DNA of 64,000 bases. Source: Anaeramoeba ignava BMAN (lineage: Eukaryota; Protista; Anaeramoebae). The stretch covers positions 62,001-126,000 of the forward strand of contig JAPDFW010000108.1 of the NCBI GenBank assembly GCA_028826165.1, read 5' to 3'. A program made the translations under genes and the position numbers. Below the pieces are notes generated by a model that worked only from the letters and a program-made list of their open reading frames with translations, searched no databases and was not told where the DNA came from. Below, piece by piece: positions 9,752-63,812 of the stretch (positions are counted from its first letter, which is position 1; each line of letters opens with the position of its first letter).

Positions 9752-12700
9752 ATGCAATTTTTTAACCTTGTTTTTCCTTTTTGGGAAAATCATAATCCAC
9801 CAAAACATCAAATAACAAAAACATTAATTTCTGAAAATCAAACTTATATTGCAACAGGAGGAATTGATGGATTAATTACAACTTGGAAGGTTAAAAATGA
9901 ATTTGATAAATATTCAATTTTTCCAATTTCTGTACTTTTTGCTCATAATTCTGAAATTACTTCTTTAATAAATATATTGTATAGATTTTCTCTTGCATTT
10001 GCAAGTGGTAAATATATCTCTTTTCTTTTTATTTTTTTTATTTTTAATTTGCTGATTGAAAATTTTTGACAGATTTTGATGAAAAAATTTTTTTAATTTA
10101 AAATTGATTTAATTTAAATTTAAAATTGATTTAATTTTAATTTAATTTTGATTTAAATTTGATTTAAATTTGATTTAAAATTGAATTTAAATTGAATTTA
10201 TTTTAATTTTAATTTTGATTTAAATTTGATTTAAATTTGATTTAAATTTAATTTAAATTTGAATTTAATTTAATTTAAATTTGAATTTAATTTAATTTTA
10301 ATTTAATTTTGATTTAAATTTGATTTAATTTAAATTTGATTTAAAATTGATTTTGATTTGATTTAAAATTGATTTAAATTTGATTTAAATTTGATTTAAA
10401 TTTGATTTAAAATTTGATTTAAATTTGATTTAAATTTGATTTAAATTTGATTTAAATTTGATTTAAATTTGATTTAAATTTGATTTAAATTTGATTTAAA
10501 TTTGATTTAAATTTGATTTATATTTGATTTAAATTTGATTTAAAATTGATTTAATTTTGATTTAAATTTGATTTAAAATTGATTTAATTTTAATTTAATT
10601 TTGATTTAAATTTGATTTAAATTTGATTTAAAATTGATTTAATTTTGATTTAAATTTGATTTAAATTTGATTTAAATTTGATTTAAATTTGATTTAAATT
10701 TGATTTAAAATTGAATTTAAATTGAATTTATTTTAATTTTAATTTTGATTTAAATTTGATTTAAATTTGATTTAAATTTGATTTAAATTTGATTTAAATT
10801 TGATTTAAATTTGATTTAAATTTGATTTAAATTTGATTTAAATTTGATTTAAATTTGATTTAAATTTGATTTAAATTTGATTTAAATTTGATTTAAATTT
10901 GATTTAAATTTGATTTAAATTTGATTTAAATTTGATTTAAATTTGATTTAAATTTGATTTAAATTTGATTTAAATTTGATTTAAATTTGATTTAAAATTG
11001 AATTTAAATTGATTTTAATTTTAATTTTGATTTAAATTTGATTTAAATTTGATTTAAATTTGATTTAAATTTGATTTGAATTTGAATTTGATTTAAATTT
11101 GATTTAAATTTGATTTGAATTTGATTTGAATTTGATTTAAATTTGATTTAAATTTGATTTAAATTTAATTTAAATTTGATTTAAAATTGATTTAAATTTG
11201 ATTTAAAATTGATTTAAATTTGATTTAAAATTGATTTAAATTTGATTTAAAATTGATTTAAATTTGATTTAAAATTGATTTAAATTTGATTTAAAATTGA
11301 TTTAAATTTGATTTAATTTTGATTTGATTTGATTTAAATTTGATTTAAATTTAATTTAATTTTGATTTAATTTTGATTTAAATTTGATTTAATTTTGATT
11401 TAAATTTGATTTAATTTTGATTTAAATTTGATTTAATTTGATTTAAATTTGATTTAAATTTAATTTAATTTTGATTTAAATTTGATTTAAATTTGATTTA
11501 AATTTGATTTAAATTTGATTTAAATTTGATTTAAATTTGATTTAAATTTGATTTAAATTTGATTTAAATTTGATTTAAATTTGATTTAAATTTGATTTAA
11601 ATTTGATTTAATTTTGATTTAAATTTGATTTAAATTTGATTTAAAATTGATTTAATTTTGATTTAAATTTGATTTGATTTTGATTTAAATTTGATTTAAA
11701 TTTAATTTAAATTTGATTTAAAATTGATTTAAATTTGATTTAAATTTGATTTAAATTTGATTTAAATTTAATTTAATTTTGATTTAAATTTGATTTAATT
11801 TTGATTTAAATTTGATTTAAATTTGATTTAAATTTGATTTAAATTTGATTTATATTTGATTTAAATTTGATTTAATTTTGATTTAAATTTGATTTAAATT
11901 TGATATGAATTTAATTTAAATTTGATTTAAATTTGATTTAAATTTGATTTAAATTTGATTTAAATTTGATTTAAATTTGATTTAAATTTGATTTAAATTT
12001 GATTTAGATTTGATTTAAATTTGATTTAAATTTGATTTAGATTTGATTTAAATTTGATTTAAATTTGATTTAAAATTGATTTAAATTTGATTTAAAATTG
12101 ATTTAAATTTGATTTAAAATTGATTTAAATTTGATTTAAAATTGATTTAAATTTGATTTAAATTTGATTTAAATTTGATTTAAATTTGATTTAAATTTGA
12201 TTTAAATTTGATTTAAATTTGATTTAAATTTGATTTAAATTTGATTTAAATTTGATTTATATTTGATTTATATTTGATTTAAATTTAATTTATATTTGAT
12301 TTAAATTTAATTTATATTTGATTTAAATTTGATTTAATTTTGATTTAATTTTGATTTAAATTTGATTTAATTTTGATTAAAATTTGATTAAAATTTGATT
12401 AAAATTTGATTAAAATTTGATTTAATTTTAATTTAATTTTGATTTAAAATTGATTTAAATTTGATTTAAATTTGATTTAAATTTGATTTGATTTTGATTT
12501 AAATTTGATTTAGTCTCAATCGATGGAACTTTATGTATATGGAATTTTTCAGATGGATATTGTTATTTTAAACATGAAAAATTTTTTAGTTGTAATCCAA
12601 CAAAATTATTATTTCATTCTAGTTCTGCAAGATTTTTAATAGCATCAGGAAGATCTAATATTATTGAAATAGTAGATTTAGAAACAATGAGAATTGCAAG

Positions 12701-26203: not shown

Positions 26204-29200
26204 TTAATCATCTTTTTTTAAAGGAAAATCGAATAAATTTTGTCGATATAAAAATGAATTTTTAGAATGCATTTGATAAAATTCACTAGCATTTTCAAGT
26301 TCTTCGAATTCAGATTGAGTAATATCTTCTGGAAGTTTATCAAGATAAAAATAATGAATCAAAGCCTTAATTGCACCAAAAGTTTTCTGAGAATAATCAC
26401 GAACTTGATTAGAATCATCCTTTACATTAACAAACATATTGAAAAACAATTCACTTCTAATTGCAAGAATAAGTTTATGAACTTTAATTGGTTGATCTTC
26501 AACTATAATTGCAAAATCCTTTTCTTCTTCCTTTTTAGACCAAGCTTCCAAATCACGAACCAATCCAAATCTTCTTGATTTCGATAAAATAAGTTCGTTT
26601 GACATCCCAATTTCATTAAGTAAAACGGATGTTTCTTCTGGATTTCCTTCAAAAATTCCTGAATAAATCCATTTCATCATATTTTCTACTTCTTGTTTTT
26701 CTTTTTTCTCACAAAATGGGATTAGTTTCTCAACCAAATCCTTTCCTAATCTCATTTCTATTATCTGTTTATGACAATTAATAGTTCCATTATCGCTTGT
26801 AATTATAAAATCAGTTAATTCACTTTTTTGATAAAATTCCAAAAATTCTTGACAAATATTCTCATAATTATCCAAAAAATCCTTTAAATATTGATCATAA
26901 CATTGTACCGATATTTTTCTTTTATTGTATAACGCATAAACTGGTGCTCCATTGTCAATCAATATTGTTAAATACTTCAATTTCTCTTTATTATCCAAAG
27001 GTGATCGAAGACAAAATACTAAAATTGGGATAACCTTAAAATATAATAAATAAAAATCATTTTGATTTTTTTCCTTTTTGTTTTTTTTTACTTTATCATT
27101 CCAAAAATTTGTTTTTGTCGCAAGCAATTTAATCACAGATTCTGGACTTTTTTGATTTATTGCTGTATGAATTACTGTTTGATTCTTTTTTTTTTTTTCA
27201 AATTATTTTCCAAAAAAAAAATTATTTAATCTTCACTTTAAAAAAAAATATTTTTTTTTACAGACTTTTGAAAAAAATATGAATTAAAAAACAAACACAA
27301 TCAATTTTGAGATTAAATCATTTCTTTTTTACTGCCTAAATTAAAAAATTAATTAATTAATTAATTTCTTAATTATAATTAATTTAAAAATTACATCCTT
27401 TTCCAATTATAAATTTTATAAATTTTGTTTTTTTTTGGAATTATTTTTTTTAATACAGTAATATTTGGATCAAGTCCTTTTGAAAATAAATATTGAATAA
27501 AATCTAAATCATAATCATTTTTTCTAATCATTTGATTTAGAATTGTTCCATCCCAATTATTCATTAAAAACTTCAAAACAAAAACAAAAACAAAACCAAA
27601 AACAAATTTAATTTTCCAATTTCTTCTTTTTCTTCTTCTAATAATTATTTACAACCTAAATCAAAAAAGCAAAAGAAATGATTAATTTATAAAAAAAAAT
27701 TAACAAAAAATTAATCATTTACATTTGTTGAATGATTCACATTATCTCCAAGTTCAATAAATTTACGGAGAATTTCTTTTGGCAATTTTTCTTGATATGC
27801 TAAAAATAATGGTGTAAATGCCTAAATAAATCAATTAATAAACCAATTAAACTAAACTAAGATAAATTAAATTAAATATTTTACATACTATTTATTTTTG
27901 TAATTAAAAAAAAAGAAAAAAACTTTCTAAAAAAAATTATTCCTATTTTTAAAATTCTCACTTCCTATTTCAAATATTTTTTTTGGTTTATCAAAAAAAT
28001 ATTTCCATTTTCTTTGAATTTACTTGCTAAATATAAGAATTTATTTAATATTTTACAAAAAAAAAGAAAGTATTCTTTTTCTATTTTCAAACATGCTAAA
28101 TATTATTTTAACAAAAAAAAAGAACAAGAACAAAAAGAAGTTTTAATTTGATTTAATATAATTTAATATAATAAATTATCTACAATTAGTTAAATTATTA
28201 CATACTATTTTTTTTTATTAAAATTTAGATTTTTCATTTTAAATTTAGATTTTTTTACTTTCTAAAATTTAAAAATTAAAATTTAAAATTTAAAAATTAT
28301 TTCATTAAAATAATAAAATAATTACATGCTAAAATGAAAAATAAAATGAATAATTTATTTTCGAAAATAATTTAATGATTAATTTTTTTACGTTCTAAAT
28401 CCAAAAAAAAAAGGAATGAATGAATAAATAAATAAATTTATTTTCCAAACTAAAATAATTGTTTTGGTTTTCACTTTCTAAAAATAAAACAATAAGAAAA
28501 TCGAAAAAAAGGAAAGTATTCTTTGATAAAAGTTACATGCTAAAAAAAAAAGTGATTAATTTTTATAATTTTGATTTTGATATTAATTTTGATTACAATT
28601 AAAAAATTCAAATCAACTCCAGAAGAAAGTAAATAATCAATTAATTCAAGATTATGATTTTTAATTGCAAAAATCAAAGGTCTATATCCCTTTTTGTTTT
28701 ATAAATATAAATATATAAAATCTAAATAAAAATAAAAATAAAAAGTTTTTACTTCCTTTTTTAAATTTGAATTTTTAATTAAAAGAAACGAAAATGATAA
28801 TAAATTTTTACATACTAATTTCCAAAATTTTCAATTTTAATTCCAAATTTATAATAATTTTTCAAATTAAATTTACAATCTAACAAAAGAAAAAAAACAA
28901 ACTTTAAGAATTAAGTCATTTCAAAATAAAAATAAATACCATCTAAAGAAAATTTAGCAAAAAAAATTTAATTATTTCTTAAAAGAATTATAGATTAATT
29001 TACTCTCTTTTTATTTATTAAATTAATTATTATTATTATTATTTAATCTTAAAAAATGTTTTAAAATTAAAAATGGAAATATTTTTACTGACTAAAGAAA
29101 AAGAAAATAATCAGAAAAAAAAAATTTCGAAAATGGAAAAATTTGTTTTGTTTTGTTTTGTTTTTTTACAGAAGAAAAATTTATATCAGCTCCTTTTGAA

Positions 29201-29487
29201 ACTAATAATTGAACAATTTTTAAATCAATATCTTTTTTTTGACAAGCAAAAGAAAGAGGAGAAATATCAAACTATTTAAATAAAGAGAAGAAGTTTAATT
29301 TGCTTTTTTTTTTAATTTGCTTTTTTTTTTTTACATTCTAAATTATAAATTCAATTAATTTCAATTATAAATATTAATTCAATTATAAAAAAATACTTAC
29401 ATTTGGTGTGTTTATATTTTTTTCATTGAGAACTTTTTCAACTTCTTTTAAAGAATTTGAATCAATTACTTTAAATAAATCAGTCAT
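26204..29487 (-). CDS. Ankyrin-repeat plus tandem BTB/POZ protein with one-repeat-per-exon structure and 21 single-codon microexons
   Basis: Large exons, all phase 0: 29487-29401 (MTDLFKVIDSNSLKEVEKVLNEKNINTPN), 29271-29170 (FDISPLSFACQKKDIDLKIVQLLVSKGADINFSS), 28689-28597 (GYRPLIFAIKNHNLELIDYLLSSGVDLNFLI), 27821-27723 (AFTPLFLAYQEKLPKEILRKFIELGDNVNHSTN), 27570-27457 (FLMNNWDGTILNQ...SKGLDPNIT), 27184-27092 (NQTVIHTAINQKSPESVIKLLATK...), 27034-26204 (last ankyrin plus BTB LTDFII...CHKQII and BTB KDFAIIV...VHKLILAIRSELFFNMF). Confidence 0.88.
27262..27397 (-). other. Three 3-nt microexons GAT(D) 27395-27397, GCA(A) 27333-27335, TCT(S) 27262-27264
   Basis: Each is flanked by AG and GTAA on the minus strand; including all three gives GLDPNIT-D-A-S-NQTVIH, canonical ankyrin spacing with the conserved Asp. 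Confidence 0.85.
27653..27655 (-). other. Single 3-nt microexon GTT(V)
   Basis: TTAG|GTT|GTAAAT, with flanking introns of 67 and 82 nt. Confidence 0.7.
27885..28539 (-). other. Array of ten 3-nt microexons between ankyrin exons 3 and 4: H,K,N,H,K,Y,H,Q,E,Y
   Basis: AG|NNN|GT at 28537-39 CAT, 28475-77 AAA, 28392-94 AAC, 28326-28 CAT, 28259-61 AAA, 28202-04 TAT, 28093-95 CAT, 28024-26 CAA, 27962-64 GAA, 27885-87 TAT; introns 54-106 nt. Confidence 0.82.
28753..29091 (-). other. Array of six 3-nt microexons between ankyrin exons 2 and 3: S,R,M,I,Y,E
   Basis: AG|NNN|GTA at 29089-91 TCA, 29004-06 AGA, 28940-42 ATG, 28877-79 ATT, 28812-14 TAT, 28753-55 GAA; introns 56-82 nt. Confidence 0.82.
29335..29337 (-). 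other. Single 3-nt microexon AAT(N)
   Basis: TTTAG|AAT|GTAAAA, both flanking introns 63 nt; restores canonical spacing NINTPN-N-FDISPL. Confidence 0.78.
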
Positions 29488-29664: not shown

Positions 29665-30390
29665 TTAAAATCCAATAAACCTCATTTTATATTTTTTAAG
29701 TGGAATATAAAACAAGAAAGAATTCAATATAATTAATAAAAAAATCAGAAATTCAACAACAGATGCACTTGAAGAATGTTCACTTTGAAGAGCAGCCAAA
29801 ATTACAAAAATAATCGTAAGAATGAAAATTGTTGCAAAAATTACAAAATGAAACACAGCAAGTTTCATTGACGATTTTGGATCTTGGATGTCTAGTTTCT
29901 TTGAAAATCTTGCAACAATTGCATAAATAACATCGGTTATTAAAGAATGAAAGCAATAAAATATATAAAATAAAACTGCAAATGTTGTGTGAGCTTTATA
30001 TGAATGTCCGATTGGGAACGCTCCAGCTAATCCAAGGAAAATTGAGCTTAGAACTCCAAAAATAAATGAGAATTTGATTGTGCGAATAAATTTATTTCCT
30101 TGAACTAAACTCATTGTTAGCTGTATTTGATGTTTCTGTTGATAATATATGCAAGCACAAAATATAAAAAAAAAGAATGAACTGAATAAAACTCCGATTG
30201 TAAAAATATTGCGTTCGGGTATTCGATTTCCTAACTCGCTAATAAATGGAAAAGTTCTTTTTGTTTCATTTGTGCTAACTGTAATTATAAAACTTAGCAT
30301 CACAGTAACAAGGAAACCCACTGAAAAAATTATTGGGAAACCTGCCAAATTAATATTAAGTTGTCCTTTTGGAATTGAAAGGTTGTTCAT
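29665..30390 (-). CDS. DRAM/Frag1/Sfk1 (TMEM150) family multi-pass membrane protein, single exon
   Basis: FPFISELGNRIPERNIFT motif, about six hydrophobic segments, AHTTFA, and a C-terminal VVEF helix. Confidence 0.8.
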   Translation of the reverse strand: MNNLSIPKGQLNINLAGFPIIFSVGFLVTVMLSFIITVSTNETKRTFPFISELGNRIPERNIFTIGVLFSSFFFFIFCACIYYQQKHQIQLTMSLVQGNKFIRTIKFSFIFGVLSSIFLGLAGAFPIGHSYKAHTTFAVLFYIFYCFHSLITDVIYAIVARFSKKLDIQDPKSSMKLAVFHFVIFATIFILTIIFVILAALQSEHSSSASVVEFLIFLLIILNSFLFYIPLKKYKMRFIGF

Positions 30391-35111: not shown

Positions 35112-38100
35112 ATGGGAAATTGTGGAGGAAGTGAAAAGCAAGAGGCTCGTACAAAAAGAATTGATGAACAACTCAAATCTCAACGACCAAAATTAGATAA
35201 CGAAATTAAGATTCTTCTGCTTGGTAAAAAAAATTTAATCAAAATTTAACAGAAAATTTGTTAACCAATTTTTTTTTGAAAAAAAAAATTTTTTTCGTTG
35301 AATTTTTTGTTAATGATTCCTTGTTGGAAAAAAGGTGCTGGTGATAGTGGAAAGTCTACAGTTATGAAGCAAATGAAAATTATTCATGGAAAAGGTTTTA
35401 CTGATACTGAAAAAAAAGAGTTTATTGATGCAATTTATGAAAATCTTATAATTAATGCAAAAGCTCTTGTGCATGCAGTTTCTCGTTTTGGTTTAGAATT
35501 TTTAGAAGAAAATGAAGTAAGGATTCTTGAAAAGTTTTTTTCTTAATTATCAAAAAAGATCGAAAAAAAAAAAAAAAGAAAAAAATAAAATAAACAAAAA
35601 AATAAATAGATAGGAAGATATAAAGGAAAACAAATACAATTTCATCATTTAATAATAATTTTAATAATAAATTAAATAATAAATTTAATAATAAATTTAA
35701 TAATAAATTTAATAATAAATTTAATAATAAATTTAATAATAAATTCAATAATAAATTCAATAATAAATTTAATAATAAATTTAATAATAAATTAATAATA
35801 ATTTAATAATAATTTAATAATAATTTAATAATAAATTTAATAATAAATTTAATAATAATTTTATTAATAATTTTAATAATAATTTTAATAATAATTTTAA
35901 TAATAATTTTAATAATAATTTTAATAATAATTTTAATAATAAATTTAATAATAAATTTAATAATAATTTTAATAATAATTTTAATAATAATTTTTAATAA
36001 TAAATTTAATAATAAATTTAATAATAATTTAAATAATAATTTTAATAATAATTTTAATAATAAATTTAATAAATAATATTATTAATTTTAATAATAATTT
36101 TAATAATAATTTTTAATAATAATTTTAATAATAATTTTAATAATAATTTTAATAATAAATTTAATAATAAATTTAATAACAATTTTAATAATAATTTTAA
36201 TAATAATTTTAATAATAATTTTAATAATAATTTTAATAATAAATTTGATAATAATTTTAATAATAATTTTAATAATATTTTTAATAATAATTTTAATAAT
36301 AAATTTAATAATAATTTAAATAATAAATTTAATAATAATTTTAATAATAATTTTAATAATATTTTTAATAATAATTTTAATAATAATTATAATTATAATT
36401 ATAATAATAATTTTAATAATAATTTTAATAATAATTTTAATAATAATTATAATAATAATTTTAATATTAATATTATTAATAATTTTAATAATAAATTTAA
36501 TAATAAATTTAATAATAAATTTAATAATAAATTTAATAATAAATTTTAATAATAATTTTAATAATATTATTAATAATTATAATAATAATTTTAATAATAA
36601 TTTTAATAATAATTTTAATAATAATTTTAATAATAATTTTAATAATAATTTTAATAATAATTTTAAAAATAATTTTTAATAATAATTTTAATAATAATAA
36701 TTATAATAATAATAATAATAATTTTAATAATAATAAATAATAATAATTTTTAATAATAAATTAAATAATAAATTTAATAATAATAATTTTAATAATAATT
36801 TTAATAATAATTTTAATAATAAATTTTAATAATAATTTTAATAATAATTTTTAATAATAATTTTTTAATAATTTTAATAATAATTTTAATAATAATTTTA
36901 ATAATAAATTTTAATAATAATTTTAATAATAATTTTAATAATAATTTTAATAATAATTTTAATAATAAATTTTAATAATAATTTTTAATAATAAATTTTA
37001 ATAAAATTTTTAATAATAATTTTAATAATAATTTTAATAATAAATTTAATAATAAATTTAATAATAATTTTAATAATAAATTTAATAATTTTAATAATAA
37101 TTTTAATAATAAATTTAATAATAAATTTTTAATAATATTTAATAATAAATTTAATAATAATTTTAATAATAATTTTTAATAATAATTTTTAATAATAATT
37201 TTTAATAATAAATTTTAATAATAATTTTAATAATAAATTTTAATAATAAATTTAATAATAAATTTAATAATAAATTTAATAATAAATTTAATAATAAATT
37301 TTAATAATAATTTTAATAATAATTTTAATAATAATTTTAATAATAATTTTAATAATAATTTTAATAATAATTTTAATAATAATTTTAATAATTTAATAAT
37401 AATTTTAAATAATAATTTTAATAATAATTTTAATAATAAATTTAATAATAAATTTAATAATAATTTTAATAATAATTTTAATAATAAATTTAATAATAAT
37501 TTTAATAATAATTTTAATAATTTTAATAATAATTTTAATAATAATTTTAATAATAATTTTAATAATAATTTTAATAATAATTTTAATAATAATTTTAATA
37601 ATAATTTTAATAATAATTTTTAATAATAATTTTAATAATAATTTTAATAATAATTTTAATAATAATTTTAATAATAAATTTAATAATAAATTTTAATAAT
37701 AATTTTAATAATAATTTTAATAATAATTTTAATAATAATTTTAATAATAATTTTAATAATAATTTTAATAATAATTTTAATAATAATTTTTAATAATTTT
37801 AATAATAATTTTAATAATAATTTTAATAATAATTTTAATAATAAATTTAATAATAATTTTAATAATAATTTTAATAATAAATTAAATAATAATTTTAATA
37901 ATAATTTTAATAATAATTTTAATAATAATTTTAATAATAAATTTAATAATAATTTTTAATAATAATTTTAATAATAATTTTAATAATAATTTTAATAATA
38001 ATTTTAATAATAATTTTAATAATAATTTTAATAATAATTTTAATAATAATTTTAATAATAATTTTAATAATAATTTTAATAATAAATTTAATAATAATTT

Positions 38101-39431
38101 TAATAATAAATTAAATAATAATTTTAATAATAAATTAAATAATAATTTTAATAATAATTTTAATAATAAATTAAATAATAATTTTAATAATAATTTTAAT
38201 AATAATTTTAATAATAAATTTAATAATAAATTTAATAATAATTTTAATAATAATTTTAATAATAATTTTATTATAATTTTATTAATATTTATAATTTTAT
38301 TATAATTTTATTAATATTTATAATTTTATTATAAATTTTAATAATAAATTAACTAGCAAAAAGTTTCACGTTTTGAAAAATTAGCTCCACATGCAAGTTC
38401 TTTTTCTTCAGAAATTGCACAAGATATGATGGATTTATGGAAAGATCCAGCTATTAAAAGTGCTTATACCAGAAGTTCAGAATTTCAATTAAATAATAGT
38501 GCAGAATAGTAAATCAAAATCCAATATTATTCCAAATTATTTATTTTTGAATTAAATTAAATGTGAATTTGTTTTTTTGAAGTTTTTTTGGTAGAATTCC
38601 TGATATTATTAGTTCTGGATATGTTCCATCCGTTGATGATATTTTACGAGTAAGAATTAAAACTACAGGAATCAATGTTTCTCGTTTTGAGGTTGATAGT
38701 GTCGAATTTCAAATGGTTGATGTTGGTGGTCAACGTAACGAAAGAAAGAAATGGTAAATTCATTTACTTATTTATTATTTGGAGAAAAATCTCCAAAATT
38801 TAAACGCAATATTTAATTCAAAAAAAAAAATATCACAATTTCTGATTTGCTTCAAAAGGATTCATTGTTTTCAAGTAAAAAAAAAATATCCTCATTTATA
38901 ATCAAAAAAAAACCATTTACAAGAAAAGAATAATTAAAAATTTCCAATTTTTAGAATGTAACATCCGCAATATTTTGTGTTGGTACAAGTGAATATGACC
39001 AAGGTTTATATGAAGATCAATCAGAAAATAGAATGATTGAAGCACTAAATTTATTTGCAGAAATTTGTAATTGCAAATGGTTCGAAAATACTGAGATGAT
39101 TCTTTTTTTTAACAAAGATGATCTTTTCAGAGAAAAGATTAAAACTGTCAGTTTAAAAACTTGTTTTGATGATTATGATCAAGGACTTGATTATGAAGAA
39201 GCTAAAACCTTTCTTACTCGAAAATTTAAGTCTGTTTGCAATAATCAGTCAAAGCGAATTTATGAACATTTCACAACAGCAACAAACACAAAAAATATTG
39301 AATATGTTTTTTCTGGTAAATTATTTTCTTATCTTTTTATTTTCTTATCTTTTTATTTTCTTATCTTATTATTTTTATTATCTTTATTAGATATTAAGGA
39401 TATTCTTCTTTCAAACATTAAACATATTTGA
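35112..39431 (+). CDS. Heterotrimeric G-protein alpha subunit
   Basis: MGNC lipidation start; ILLLG|AGDSGKST; RIKTTG; [12 protein letters not shown]|IHCFQ; NKDDLF; TTATNT. Includes a 16-nt exon at 38859-38874. Confidence 0.95.
35517..38356 (+). repeat. 2.8-kb G-alpha intron filled by an (AATAATAATTTT)n satellite
   Basis: GT at 35517 and AG at 38355-38356; phase-0 join NE|QKV; interior is almost pure A/T. Confidence 0.92.
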
Positions 39432-39629
39432 TTCTTTCTTTTTTTTGGATTTCTACTCAAGATTTTTGACTTCTTCTTTCTTTTATTCTTTCTTACATTC
39501 TTTTATTCACACTTTGATTTATAACAACAACAGATCCAACAACTTTTTTTTTTTTTGAATTTCTTAATAAAATTGTTATTGATTTTTTTCAAATTTTACA
39601 TAAAACAAATTTCCATTTTAATAATTTTG

Positions 39630-40230
39630 CCAATTAAAAAATTAATAGAAAATTAAAATAAATTTATAATTTATTTTAAATTATTTATTAATTAAATTCC
39701 AAAATAAATTGATTATTAAATATTATTAAATTTTATTAAAAAGAAAAGAAAAAAATATTTTTTTTGATTATTTTGATCATAATTTTCGCAATTAAAAAAT
39801 TAATAGAAAATTAAAATTTATTTATAATTTATTTTTAAATTATTAATTAATTAAATATTAAAACAAATTGATTATTAAATATTATTAAATTTAAAACCCT
39901 AAAAAGAAAAGAAAAATATTTTTGATTATCTTTTAATCATAATTTTTGCAATTAAAAATTAATAGAAAATTAAAATAAATTTATAATTTATTTTAAATTA
40001 TTAATTAATTAAATTTTAAAACAAATTTATTATTAAATATTATTAAATTTTAAACCCTAAAAAGAAAAGAAAAAAATATTTTTTTTTGATTATTTTGATC
40101 ATAATTTTGTTAATTAAAAATTAATAGAAAATTAAAATATATTTATAATTTATTTTAAATTATTAATTAATTAAATTCCAAAATAAATTTATTATTAAAA
40201 ATTTTTAAAAATATTTTATTAAAAAGAAAA
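39630..40230. repeat. Four-copy ~160-bp intergenic tandem repeat
   Basis: AATTAAAAATTAATAGAAAATTAAAAT recurs near 39632, 39790, 39949 and 40112. Confidence 0.85.
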
Positions 40231-40569
40231 AGAAAAATATTTTTAATAAAAATTAAATAAATAATTTTGATAAATAAAAAATTAAATAAAAATAAAATCT
40301 TTTTTGTTTTTATTGTTGAAAAGGGTTATTTTTTTTATTTATTATTTTTTTTTTATTTAATTTTTATTTAAAAAAAAAAAGAAATCAAAAATTTAAAAGG
40401 AAATAAAGTTAATTTACAGTTGGAAATGAAGGTTTTTTAAAATAAAAAAAAATAAAAAAAAAAGATCATTTTTTTCTTCTTTTTTTAATTTTTCTTTCTT
40501 ATTAATTTCCCAATAAAAAAAATAAAATAAAAAAAATAAATAAAATAATAAAGTAAATAAATAAAAAGT

Positions 40570-40851
40570 ATGAATTTCCCAAAACTAACAAAAGAAACAA
40601 AAGAGAATCGAAATGAAGCAAGTGAAGAACAACAACAACAACAAGATTTAAATGAAACAGATTTAACTGAAGAACAATTTAAAGAGATTATTTCACAAAG
40701 AATGCAAAAAGCACTTGATAACAGAAACAAAGCAATTGAAGAAGCTTATAATACTTATTTTCAAGCTCAACAAAAATTAATGCATGATTTTTTGGATAGT
40801 ATTAAACAATTTGAGATTGAAGAGTTTCTTTCTTCTCTCAACAAAAAATGA
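40570..40851 (+). CDS. Small helical hypothetical protein (93 aa)
   Basis: Uninterrupted ORF with coding-like composition inside AT-rich intergenic DNA; no family recognised. Confidence 0.5.
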   Translation: MNFPKLTKETKENRNEASEEQQQQQDLNETDLTEEQFKEIISQRMQKALDNRNKAIEEAYNTYFQAQQKLMHDFLDSIKQFEIEEFLSSLNKK

Positions 40852-41329
40852 TTCTCAACTAATTATTCTTTTTTTTCTATTTTGGCTTTTTATAAAACAA
40901 TTTTTTCTTTGTTTTTTGTTTTTTTGTTTTTTTTAGTTACTCTCCTTTTTTTTAAGAGAAAAAATTCTTTTATAAAAACTAAAAAAATAACCCTAATTTT
41001 AATTTGGTTTTGTTTTTAAATTTAATTTTAATTTTAATTTTAATTTTTATTTTAATTTTAAAAATTTTTTTCAAGATCATTTATAGTTATTCTGAAATTA
41101 TTCAGAAGCAATTAACTTAAAAATTTATTAAATATAATTAAATTAAAGTTAATCCATTTATTGGTTTATTTATTTCCAATCTTTTTTCCTTTTATTTTCT
41201 TATTAAAAAAGGGGGATAAACAAAAAAAAAATAAAAGAAAAAAAAAATACCCTTTTTTGATTTTATTTAATTTCTTTAATTATTTTAAATTAAAACAAAA
41301 CAAAATTTAATTTGAAATTAATATGAAAA

Positions 41330-43995
41330 TTATTAAAATAAATTAATAAATTAATATAAAATATTATAATTATAAATAATTATAAATAAATCTTTAATTA
41401 TTTTAAATTAAAACGAAATATATTTGATTAATAAAATTTCTTATTTTGGATCATTTCCTTTTATAACAAATTTAAAATGAAATTAATTTGAAAATAATTA
41501 AAATAAATTAATATATTAATATAAAATATTATAATTATAAATAATTATAAATAAATCTTTTATTATTTTAAATTGAAAAAATATATTTGATTAATAAAAT
41601 TTCTTATTTTGGATCATTTCCTTTTTAAAACAAATTTAAAAATGAAATTATTGATAAAATAAATTAATAAATTAATATAAAATATTATAATTATAAATAA
41701 TTATAAATAAATCTTTAATAATTTTAAATTGAAAAAATATATTTGTCAGCAAAAAGGAAAAATTTCCTAAAGCATAAATAGATCTTTAGAATAATATTAA
41801 ATTAAAATAAATTAATAAATTAATATAAAATATTATAGTTATAAATAATTATAAATAAATCTTTAATAATTTCTAATTGAAAAAAAATATATTTGATTAA
41901 TAAAAATTTCTTATTTTGGATCATTTCCTTTTAAAACAAAATTTAAAATGAAATTAATTTGAAAATAATTAAAATAAATTAATAAATTAATATAAAATAT
42001 TATAATTATAAATAATTATAAATAAATCTTTATAATTTTAAATTGAAAAATATATTTGATTAATAAAATTTCTTATTTTGGATCATTTCCTTTTAAACAA
42101 ATTTAAAATGAAATTAATATGAAAATAATTAAAAATAAATTAATAAATTAATATAAAATATTATAATTATAAATAATTATAAATAAATCTTTAATTATTT
42201 TAAATTGAAAAATATATTTTGATTAAAAATTTCCTAAAAGCATAAATTGATCTTTAGAATATTAAATTAAAATAAAAATTAATAAATTAATAATTTTAAA
42301 TTGAAAAATATATTATAGTTATAAAATTTCTTAGATTTTTAAAATAAATTTAAAATGAAATTAATTTAGAAAATAAATTAATAAAAAATAAAATATTTTT
42401 ATAAAGCAAAAATTTTTTAATAATTTTAAATTGAAAAATATATTTGATTAATAAAATTTCTTATTTTGATCATTTCCTTTTAAAACAAATTTAAAATGAA
42501 ATTAATTTGAAAATTATTAAAATAAATTAATAAATTAATATAAAATATTATAATTATAAATAATTATAAATAAATCTTTTAATTATTTTTAAATTGAAAA
42601 AAATATATTTGATTAATAAAATTTCTTATTTTGGATCATTTCCTTTTAAAAACAAATTTAAAATGAAATTAATTTGAAAATAATTAAAATAAATTAATAA
42701 ATTAATATAAAATATTATAATTATAAATAATTATAAATAAATCTTTAATTAATTTTAAATTGAAAAAAAATATATTTGTCAGCAAAAAGAAAAATTTCCT
42801 AAAGCATAAATTGATCTTTAGAATAATATTAAATTAAAATAAATTAATAGATTAATATAAAATATTATAATTATAAATAATTATAAATAAATCTTTTAAT
42901 TATTTTAAATTAAAACAAAAATATATTTGATTAAAAATTTCTTATTTTGGATCATTTCCTTTTAAAACAAAATTATTTTGAAATTAATATGAAAATATTT
43001 AAAATAAATTATAGATTAAAAATTGTCATAAATAAATCTTTAATTATTTCGAAAAAATGAATATTTGATTAAAAAATTTCAATTAGATCTTTAAAAACAA
43101 ATTTAAAATGAAATTAATTTGAAATAATTAAAATAAATTAATAAATTAATATAAAATATTATAATTATAAATAATTATAAATAAATCTTTAATAATTTTA
43201 AATTGAAAAAAAATATATTTGATTAATAAAATTTCTTATTTTGGATCATTTCCTTTTAAAACAAAATTTATTTTGAAATTAATATGAAAATTATTAAAAT
43301 AAATTTATAGATTAATATAAAATATTATAATTATAAATAATTATAAATAAATCTTTAATTATTTTAAATTGAAAAAAAATATATTTGTCAGCAAAAAGAA
43401 AAATTTCCCTAAAGCATAAATTGATCTTTAGAATAATATTAAATTAAAATAAATTAATAAATTAATATAAAATATTATAGTTATAAATAATTATAAATAA
43501 ATCTTTAATAATTTTAAATTGAAAAAAAATATATTTGATTAATAAAATTTCTTATTTTGGATCATTTCCTTTTAAAACAAAATTATTTTGAAATTAATAT
43601 GAAAATTATTTAAAATAAATTAATAAATTAAAATAAAATATTGTAATTATAAATAATTATAAATAAATCTTTAATTATTTCTAATTGAAAAAAAATATAT
43701 TTGATTAACAAAATTTCAATTAGGTCTTTAAAACAAATTTAAAATGAAATTAATATGAAAATAATTAAAATAAATTAATAAATTAATATAAAATATTATA
43801 ATTATAAATAATTATAAATAAATCTTTAATTATTTCTAATTGAAAAAAAATATATTTGATTAAAAAAATTTCTTATTTTGGATCATTTCCTTTTAAAACA
43901 AAATTATTTTGAAATTAATATGAAAATAATTAAAATAAATTTATAGATTAATATAAAATATTATAATTATAAATAATTATAAATAAATCTTTTAT
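41330..43995. repeat. ~150-168-bp tandem satellite, about 17 copies with alternating monomer types
   Basis: Shared core TAAATAATTATAAATAAATCTTT recurs every ~150-168 bp; variants carry TTCTTATTTTGGATCATTTCC, CCTAAAGCATAAATTGATCTTTAG or CAATTAG(A/G)TCTTT. Confidence 0.9.
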
Positions 43996-44072
43996 AATTT
44001 CTCAATATTTAAAAAAAAAAATTAAAAAAAATTTTTCCATTTCACTTTTTTTCTTTTTTTTTTTTTCTTCTA

Positions 44073-61916: not shown

Positions 61917-63812
61917 ATGGAAAAATATGAAAAATTTTTTATACAAAAACAAGATTATCAAAAACTTCTAAAGACACAGAACCAAAAGCTGTACAAGATT
62001 ATTCAAGAAGCGATTGACAGAATGAAGCCGAAAGATGTAGTAGTAATAGATGATAGCAAGGAAGATCGAGAGCGTATTCGGAAGCTAGCGATTGAACGAG
62101 GAGAAGAGCGTGGATTAAAAATTAAGGGGCACACGATTCACTATGACGCGTACAACGATCAAGGACGGGACAAAGCAAACACGCGAGTACTTCTTGAGAA
62201 AGGGGAGACGTTGAGCAGGAGCTTGTCATTTGGCGAACGGGAAAGTAACTTAAAGGATATCTATAACATCATGGACGGGATCATGGACGGAAAAACAATG
62301 ATCATTGCTTTCTTCACACTCGGCCCAAGAAACTCGCGGTTCATGATCCCTGCGTTGCAGATTACTGACTCGTTCTATGTAACGCACTCGGAGCAAATCT
62401 TATATCGACCAGGTTTTCAAACTTTTTGCGATTTGAAAAATAAAGATGATTTTTTTTACTTCTATCATTCGGCAGGAAAACTTGTCAATAACGTCTCTGC
62501 CGAGCTTGACAAACGTAGAATATACATTGATCCCAAAGAAGAGCGTGTGTTTTCGATGAACAATCAGTATGCAGGAAACTCACTGGCATGCAAAAAACTA
62601 GCGTTGCGACTTGCGATCCATCGGGCAAACAACGACGTCAAAGAACCCTGGCTTACTGAGCACATGTTTTTGGCAGGTTTCCCGTCGCGTCGTGGAGATC
62701 GTTACACATACTTCACAGGCGCATTCCCGTCGGGTTGTGGAAAGACCTCGACAGCTATGATTCCAGGTGGGAAAATTGTCGGAGATGATATTGTGTACAT
62801 AAGATCCGACGATCAAGGCAGAATGATGGCCGTGAATATCGAACAAGGCTGCTTCGGAATCATCGAGGATGTTAATGCTCATGATGACCCCGAGATCTTC
62901 AAAGCAATCACAACCCCGAAAGAAGTTATTTTTTCTAACGTTCTTAACGATTCCGACGGAAATGTTTTTTGGACAGGTTGCGGAATGGAAATTCCAGATA
63001 AAGGAATCAACCACTCTGGAGACTGGAAACTAGGCAACAAGGACAGCAACGGGAAAGTGATCCCATGTTCCCATCCAAACTCACGTTACACAATCAACAT
63101 TGACGAACTTTCAAATGCGGATCTTGAAAACCTTCACAATCCAACTGGCGTCGCTGTCGATGGCATTCTTTACGGCGGAAGAGACCCCGACACCACAGTC
63201 CCAGTCGCGCAAGCTTTGTCGTGGGAACACGGCGTTTTCATCGGTGCGACTATCATGTCGGAAACAACCGCTACTACGATTTCTGGAGCGCAAAAAAGAA
63301 TCGAGAACTCTCCAATGGCAAATTTTGATTTTCTTATTGTTCCTCTTGGAAAATACCTCACAAACCACATTAACTTCGGACGATCCCTGAAGAAATGTCC
63401 GAAGGTGTTCTCGACAAACTACTTTCTTAAGGACTCCAATGGCAAATGGACGAATACTAAACTTGACAAGAAAATTTGGATCATTTGGGCTGAGGGCATC
63501 ATCCACAACGAATTCTCAGGAATCGAGACTCCGATCGGAATTATTCCAAAGTACGATGATCTCAAACAGCTTTTTGCTGAGTTCTTTACTGACGACAATG
63601 GCTCGCCAAGGCTCTATACCATCGAGGAATACAACGAACAGTTTAGTATCCGTGTTGATAAATATTTGTCAAGAATGAATTCCATTAAGAATCTTTTCAA
63701 AGACGACAAGGATATGCCTCCAGAGTTTGATAAAGAGTTCCAACGCATTTATGATGCTCTTACAGAGCTCAAGAAGGTTGGTGGTGTTATTCCTCCTTCT
63801 CATTTCATCTAA
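61917..63812 (+). CDS. pckG: GTP-dependent phosphoenolpyruvate carboxykinase, intronless, prokaryote-like
   Basis: QITDSFYV, QYAGNSLACKKLALR, WLTEHM, GAFPSGCGKTSTAM, VGDDI, HPNSRY and YGGR motifs; 631-aa uninterrupted ORF. Confidence 0.95.
   Translation: MEKYEKFFIQKQDYQKLLKTQNQKLYKIIQEAIDRMKPKDVVVIDDSKEDRERIRKLAIERGEERGLKIKGHTIHYDAYNDQGRDKANTRVLLEKGETLSRSLSFGERESNLKDIYNIMDGIMDGKTMIIAFFTLGPRNSRFMIPALQITDSFYVTHSEQILYRPGFQTFCDLKNKDDFFYFYHSAGKLVNNVSAELDKRRIYIDPKEERVFSMNNQYAGNSLACKKLALRLAIHRANNDVKEPWLTEHMFLAGFPSRRGDRYTYFTGAFPSGCGKTSTAMIPGGKIVGDDIVYIRSDDQGRMMAVNIEQGCFGIIEDVNAHDDPEIFKAITTPKEVIFSNVLNDSDGNVFWTGCGMEIPDKGINHSGDWKLGNKDSNGKVIPCSHPNSRYTINIDELSNADLENLHNPTGVAVDGILYGGRDPDTTVPVAQALSWEHGVFIGATIMSETTATTISGAQKRIENSPMANFDFLIVPLGKYLTNHINFGRSLKKCPKVFSTNYFLKDSNGKWTNTKLDKKIWIIWAEGIIHNEFSGIETPIGIIPKYDDLKQLFAEFFTDDNGSPRLYTIEEYNEQFSIRVDKYLSRMNSIKNLFKDDKDMPPEFDKEFQRIYDALTELKKVGGVIPPSHFI

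Follow-up and report, generated by a model that had tools for sequence, protein, structure and literature searches.

In Dscam1, exons are arranged in mutually exclusive clusters, each of which contributes exactly one exon to the transcript. Runs of tiny exons, mostly multiples of 3 nucleotides (nt) in length, characterize the multigene families of schistosome micro-exon genes (MEGs), which are hard to annotate and tied to protein variability (PMC10526429). The leucine-rich repeat (LRR) ROCO genes of brown algae, i.e., candidate immune receptors, encode one repeat per exon (PMC3341825, PMC11378527), and the aphid bicycle genes, a large family that evolves fast, have numerous small exons that all share a phase (PMC9168663). 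Isolated microexons of 1 to 3 nt, which are spliced and often overlooked in annotation, are known from Drosophila hth (PMC7392893), cytohesin-1 (PMC6314551), MAP4K5 (PMC8632122) and plants (PMC8831610). Here we report on a gene encoding ankyrin repeats and a BTB domain (Ank-BTB) in Anaeramoeba ignava BMAN, an anaerobic metamonad amoeba whose introns are 92% A+T (PMC11550330), in which runs of exons of a single codon are placed at the hairpins between ankyrin repeats. The gene lies on the minus strand of the analyzed window, i.e., a stretch of 64,000 nt (positions 62,001 to 126,000 of contig JAPDFW010000108.1, our C109; assembly GCA_028826165.1, 42.8 Mb). An original prediction, made from the window's letters alone, had described these runs as arrays of single-codon exons from which the spliceosome picks subsets.

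The gene contains seven ordinary exons, and its ankyrin exons are in phase 0 and encode one repeat apiece (Table 1). All 21 AG-NNN-GT units listed in the original prediction were located at the predicted places on the minus strand, in phase 0 and with no stop codon among them; the introns that flank them measure 54-106 nt. Over the 1,808 nt that lie between ankyrin exons, we counted 23 occurrences of AG-N3-GT, as compared to 0 or 1 for each other spacing from N1 to N12 and 5 for N0, and dinucleotide shuffles gave an expectation of only 2.0 +/- 1.4 (maximum 8 in 2000). Two additional matches (TTT at 28901 and AAA at 27926) were rejected as units, as they have GTT donors and would imply introns of 19-38 nt; because these lengths fall under the minimum of 52 nt observed among 193 introns, which is comparable to the RNA-confirmed 57-nt intron of the gene, the count stays at 21. 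Genome-wide, a strict pattern of two 3-nt units located 45-75 nt apart yielded 176 matches, while the same pattern with units of 2, 4, 5 and 6 nt yielded 1, 0, 1 and 2 matches, respectively; units of other lengths served as controls, as reversed patterns varied widely, probably through simple repeats. Since paired 6-nt units are nearly absent, the pattern is tied to a single codon rather than to any length that keeps the frame. An excess in density had been required by the original prediction, and the shuffles together with the unit-length controls rule out a chance origin of the units.

Transcript sequences indicate that the units are exons. One public sequencing run (of a kind not on record) contains the gene, and its 1,008-nt contig (depth approx. 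7; hereafter the RNA contig) is spliced, as the 57-nt last intron is absent from it. At the join of exons 5 and 6, the RNA contig carries eight extra letters that, with the adjoining G, encode D, A and S in genomic order. After exon 4 it continues with GT, and five letters precede position 27566, as predicted if the V microexon is included. It also extends 32 letters past position 27821, into the place of the ten-unit array; by number, these letters are compatible with 30 + 2 (i.e., all ten units) but also with 6 + 26. Independently of this gene, the transcript-derived EukProt protein P0158 exceeds the corresponding NCBI protein P0023 by 14 residues, which match 14 of the 14 AG-NNN-GT units of its locus (L046) in the same order, including both units of a pair that flanks a 678-nt intron; a comparison of proteins likewise found loop residues K-T in EukProt P0153 that NCBI P0091 lacks. 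The RNA contig and the EukProt proteins, which cover different genes, may come from related libraries. Altogether, 18 of the 18 units checked against these assembled sequences, all in arrays of three units or fewer, were included in genomic order. These data show that, at ankyrin hairpins, splicing retains 3-nt exons jointly and in their genomic order; rather than joining the ankyrin exons directly, the transcripts contain inserted codons, and the units are true exons as originally proposed (D-A-S and V in the gene's own contig, 14/14 in P0158). A search by exon found no transcript-derived protein of the window gene, and the matches listed for a profile built on four single exons of long-array loci were all TLDc paralogs, among them a single EukProt protein, the loop of which has 4 residues.

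The public annotation represents a different reading, under which the units would be untranslated intronic motifs or recursive-splicing sites and the 472-amino acid (aa) NCBI model P0001, which fuses the ankyrin exons directly and omits all 21 units, would be right. Transcript sequences rule out non-coding motifs, refuting this reading for D-A-S as well as for all 14 P0158 units, and the annotated proteins are two residues short (hairpin spacing of 5 as compared to 7 in intron-poor paralogs); we thus consider this reading almost certainly wrong. In many A. ignava proteins at NCBI, it is apparently just the putative contact residues that are missing.

Annotated family members show a hairpin spacing of either 5 or 7 residues. 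At every locus examined, the spacing-5 class reflects annotation that skips two microexons, and an intron-poor paralog shows a spacing of 7. Among 49 loops (144 units from 11 genes, with curated coordinates), spacing 7 was found in 33 if all units are included, as compared to 2 if none is, and the 144 units contain no stop codon. The number of units offsets the length of the flank (4 residues plus three units in 4 loops, 5 plus two in 26 and 6 plus one in 3) and three-unit arrays are therefore not a choice of "two of three". In the window gene, the short clusters N and D-A-S restore canonical spacing, as had been claimed. Libraries of designed ankyrin repeat proteins (DARPins) randomise the beta-turn region of the ankyrin repeat, and LoopDARPins add a long loop (PMC4384111). 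The AlphaFold model of P0158 (predicted local distance difference test, pLDDT, 90.9) has DARPins and ankyrins as its best fold matches, and in this model each microexon pair is predicted in the loop that stops three residues before helix 1, with a putative beta-bridge flanking one pair; the claim that the units fall at the loop randomised in DARPins agrees with this placement.

We regard as probable an explanation that combines constitutive loops built of one codon per exon with diversification in DNA. The tip residues of most inter-repeat hairpins would each be specified by one 3-nt exon. The introns (approx. 69 nt, very A+T-rich) would be recognised singly, i.e., by intron definition, which would make inclusion the default, and a 3-nt exon would then require no recognition of its own. 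With all units kept, the 6- and 10-unit arrays would give invariant long loops (11 and 15 residues), comparable to those of LoopDARPins. Arrays of at least 5 units have a share of F/W/Y/H of 42%, as compared to 11% in short arrays, as expected of extended binding loops. The intron together with its codon could serve as a frame-safe module for tandem duplication, deletion or conversion, and fast mutation of the unit codons would lead to paralog loops that differ in length and sequence. Judging from their domain class, the BTB families may be a collection of substrate adaptors of the Cullin-3 type that differ in their binding surfaces, for which a defensive role would be plausible.

To what extent the device extends beyond ankyrin repeats is indicated by tandem BTB-BACK-TLDc genes (L032-L034; G000:C1, approx. 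942 kb and 1.058-1.073 Mb), which carry arrays of 7-25 exons of 3 nt in the loop following GPxFG. These exons are in phase 1, such that each codon straddles two exons, and joining them in order gives open, D/Y/F-rich loops. Tandem TLDc paralogs that are 97-99% identical over the 300 nt upstream have 16, 15 and 25 units, and in L032 the same loop is free of introns in a neighbouring paralog. Among annotated paralogs, of which the matches listed include more than 100, this loop measures 2-12 residues, with one of 21. Two further loci, L031 (G000:C1, approx. 409-413 kb) and L048 (C57, approx. 595-598 kb), consist of BTB-BACK-like genes followed by 32-36 phase-0 single-codon exons in a repeat-spacer-like layout; no host domain was identified for these arrays, and the stretch they encode is charged and of low complexity. 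In these loci, the introns that separate 20-36 units (approx. 72 or 105 nt) are 89-95% identical to each other, while the exon bases share just 35-50%. Such a pattern would be expected if an intron-plus-codon unit had been duplicated in tandem or converted and its codon had then changed fast, and cloned introns occur in L034 as well as in L031 and L048.

Additional loci were noted. Shorter arrays adjoin an ankyrin-like exon in L036, L042, L043 and L047. L037 and L040 are ankyrin genes located beside putative RING-kinase open reading frames (ORFs), with mostly three microexons per loop and an exon start that is one residue shorter; L037 also has an aromatic array of 10 units. L050 (G000:C60, approx. 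868 kb) carries a W/F/Y-rich array of 14 units, and the corresponding NCBI protein P0115 lacks a whole ankyrin exon.

In A. flamelloides, the orthologs of which average 37% identity (PMC11550330), three loci (L052, L054 and L055) contain two candidates, an E-N pair with a distance of approx. 105 nt, located toward the end of introns that measure 2.5-7 kb, and a single Y; the introns holding E-N and Y measure 1-7 kb. On genomic sequence only, these candidates restore spacing 7 in both loops, which suggests that the single-codon layout may predate the split between A. ignava and A. flamelloides.

The original prediction held that the 6- and 10-unit loops need only about two residues and that subsets are therefore chosen, giving 675 or up to 2^16 splice patterns. 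This argument is weakened because long loops exist without microexon arrays: loop 4 of the window gene has 13 residues including V in the RNA contig, mostly coded within exon 5, and in the A. flamelloides paralog P0059 a single exon encodes a 20-residue loop. The pattern numbers are arithmetic upon a hypothetical mechanism. A more restricted form, in which loops of 1-3 units are constitutive and arrays of 6-25 units are skipped combinatorially to give many loop variants per gene, is possible, but we consider it unlikely. Any subset of phase-0 units would preserve the frame, and the phase-1 TLDc arrays would tolerate skipping, as stop codons arise in just 2 of 733 skip joins (adjacent joins give 0 of 87, a difference too small to speak for or against joining in order, P = 0.47); near-identical neighbouring splice sites could also compete, and both the symmetric micro-exons of MEGs (PMC10526429) and the repeat exons of ROCO genes (PMC11378527) are spliced alternatively. 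On the other hand, no skipped form was found among the 18 units checked in assembled sequences, in arrays of up to three, unit counts and spacing agree with full inclusion, all introns are of normal spliceable length and therefore do not force mutual exclusion, and paralogs differ in their DNA already. Exon skipping is also uncommon outside animals and usually tied to long flanking introns (PMC6142364). Diversification of BTB ubiquitin-ligase adaptors as receptors, at codon resolution and by both routes, i.e., cloned-intron arrays reshuffled in DNA and long arrays sampled by the spliceosome to give hundreds of loops per gene, is a tentative proposal that we doubt; if skipping did occur, phase-1 arrays would even generate new codons.

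The differences between loops could also be neutral. Non-adaptive intron proliferation, with tandem copies accumulating in a permissive surface loop and long loops as tolerated by-products, would be in line with an intron-rich genome of 92% A+T introns (PMC11550330), the cloned introns in L031, L048 and L034, and the many paralogs that lack these introns and have canonical loops. We nevertheless find it improbable, as at the loci examined the ankyrin units occupy one loop position and the TLDc units a loop that is already hypervariable, long arrays are rich in aromatic residues and codons diverge faster than the surrounding introns. Under this reading, the 3-nt spacing would persist only for preserving the frame, but 6-nt pairs, which would do the same, are nearly absent (2 as compared to 176).

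Several points weigh against constitutive loops diversified in DNA. Introns of the window gene are no more alike than shuffled sequences (0.57-0.61 as compared to 0.56-0.59); one 21-nt match between two introns, each following an H unit, represents a trace of duplication. Because their introns have diverged to background, the arrays of this gene would be older, and, this match aside, unit duplication in the window gene is inferred from its paralogs. RNA was read through arrays of three units or fewer, and assembled contigs and EukProt proteins give one dominant path from which rare isoforms are dropped. Exceptions to the rule on skipping are known, i.e., B. natans, Ectocarpus and Klebsormidium skip exons with short exons and short introns (PMC6142364). 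Loci in the loop table were picked by a triple-unit pattern and hence are no random sample, assembly error in A+T repeats could inflate the differences between arrays, and the Cul3 adaptor role is a putative one, proposed from the domain class.

The window gene is one member of an Ank-BTB-like family with at least 140 matches. Pfam Ank profiles match exons 2 and 3 and, weakly, exons 5 and 6. The last exon, which is identical to the corresponding part of A. ignava protein P0001, contains a BTB domain (PF00651, E = 1.6e-14) with a weak match in PDB to the A55 BTB (E = 2.8e-4). The exon map of the original prediction was right in its units, and the start of the last exon was corrected to 27034. 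Of the proposed Ank-BTB-BTB architecture, one BTB domain is clear by Pfam, while the second, more N-terminal BTB-like unit is putative and derives from a paralog model. The product with all units included is best explained as an intracellular ankyrin-BTB protein of 493 aa (472 + 21); no hydrophobic stretch was seen at the N-terminus of P0001, as judged by eye.

Table 1. Exons, microexons and last intron of the Ank-BTB gene (window positions)
Feature	Position	Strand	Evidence
Exon 1 (ATG; N-cap, 29 codons)	29401..29487	-	Sequence; agrees with NCBI model P0001
Microexon N, 3 nt, loop 1; canonical 7-residue spacing	29335..29337	-	Genomic pattern
Exon 2, ankyrin repeat, 34 codons	29170..29271	-	Pfam Ank, E = 8.9e-5
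Six-unit array S,R,M,I,Y,E	28753..29091	-	Genomic pattern
Units of six-unit array	S 29089-91; R 29004-06; M 28940-42; I 28877-79; Y 28812-14; E 28753-55	-	
Exon 3, ankyrin repeat, 31 codons	28597..28689	-	Pfam Ank_3, E = 1.7e-4
Ten-unit array H,K,N,H,K,Y,H,Q,E,Y	27885..28539	-	Genomic pattern
Ten-unit array, first five units	H 28537-39; K 28475-77; N 28392-94; H 28326-28; K 28259-61	-	
Ten-unit array, last five units	Y 28202-04; H 28093-95; Q 28024-26; E 27962-64; Y 27885-87	-	
Exon 4, ankyrin-like repeat, 33 codons	27723..27821	-	Spliced contig and P0001; no Pfam match alone
Microexon V, 3 nt, loop 4	27653..27655	-	RNA contig, by length
Exon 5, ankyrin repeat and extended N-terminal loop, 38 codons	27457..27570	-	Weak Ank_3; RNA contig
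Microexons D,A,S; canonical spacing	27395-97, 27333-35, 27262-64 (27262..27397)	-	RNA contig, direct, ordered
Exon 6, ankyrin repeat, 31 codons	27092..27184	-	Weak Ank_5; RNA contig
GT-AG intron, ordinary, 57 nt	27035..27091	-	Absent from RNA contig (spliced out)
Last exon: C-terminal repeat/cap, linker, degenerate BTB-like unit, BTB domain, stop	26204..27034	-	Pfam BTB; P0001

Directly upstream of the gene, a single ORF of the Frag1/DRAM/Sfk1 family is located at 29665-30390 on the minus strand. Elsewhere in the window, an uninterrupted 631-aa ORF on the plus strand (61917-63812) encodes a GTP-type phosphoenolpyruvate carboxykinase with approx. 41% G+C, as compared to approx. 20% windowwide, and is possibly of lateral origin, judging by its composition. 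The window also contains A+T satellites with a 12-nt unit (35648-38347; 2.7 kb, nearly 0% G+C) and an 11-nt unit (10092-12512; 2.4 kb), as well as A+T satellite blocks with units of approx. 160 nt (39621-44018). In the databases, a BTB protein of the same type (P0096, NCBI MFH0789039.1), on a 6-kb contig, is labelled as belonging to a Pseudomonadota metagenome-assembled genome, which probably represents eukaryotic contamination or transfer.

Consecutive 3-nt exons (three shown in RNA and 10 to 25 or more predicted) put both intron-definition splicing and the order in which introns are removed to an extreme test in nature. A unit of intron and codon would allow a binding loop to be lengthened and re-spelled residue by residue without loss of frame. 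The device occurs in at least two unrelated domains (i.e., ankyrin and TLDc) and in two intron phases, with candidates conserved in A. flamelloides, and the cloned introns bear on intron gain. Should long arrays be skipped, they would constitute a single-residue splice library in a protist. No published report of arrays of single-codon exons was found in a search thin on subscription papers; a term search of Anaeramoeba papers found no microexon passage, and no paper in an incomplete literature collection named both "Anaeramoeba" and "microexon".

Compared to the described systems, the gene shares with Dscam1 tandem, alternative-looking exons at ligand-binding positions, but in place of one exon per cluster, D, A and S are found in one transcript and all pairs of P0158 are included. 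Like MEGs, it has many symmetric micro-exons (21 of 3 nt). MEG exons, however, are mostly 15 nt (range 6-81, or 3-81 according to the abstract) as compared to exactly 3 nt here, MEG introns measure 0.1-5 kb as compared to typically approx. 69 nt (54-106 nt in the window gene), and MEG proteins have a signal peptide, whereas the Ank-BTB protein is without an evident one (PMC10526429); moreover, MEGs vary by alternative splicing, whereas here the arrays are confined to a loop within a folded domain, and assembled sequences of arrays of up to three units showed no skipping (18/18 included). As in ROCO genes, each repeat is encoded by one symmetric exon (phase 0, 90-114 nt), and exon shuffling with diversifying selection in DNA (PMC3341825, PMC11378527) may be comparable to what we propose; near-identical TLDc paralogs differ in array length and content. 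The ROCO unit is a whole repeat for which alternative splicing is reported, whereas the Ank-BTB gene has one-codon exons as a second tier between those that encode repeats. Bicycle genes, the products of which are putative secreted effectors, have their internal exons in phase 2 and distributed along the gene (PMC9168663), and they are not described as single-codon arrays in binding loops. DARPins and LoopDARPins (PMC4384111) share variable beta-turn residues and the option of an added long loop, but they are engineered; here the hairpin positions alone, as opposed to those in the helices, form exons of their own, and no single gene was shown to yield a library. Finally, the isolated microexons of other organisms stand alone, whereas here up to 25 or more follow one another consecutively, in many paralogs.

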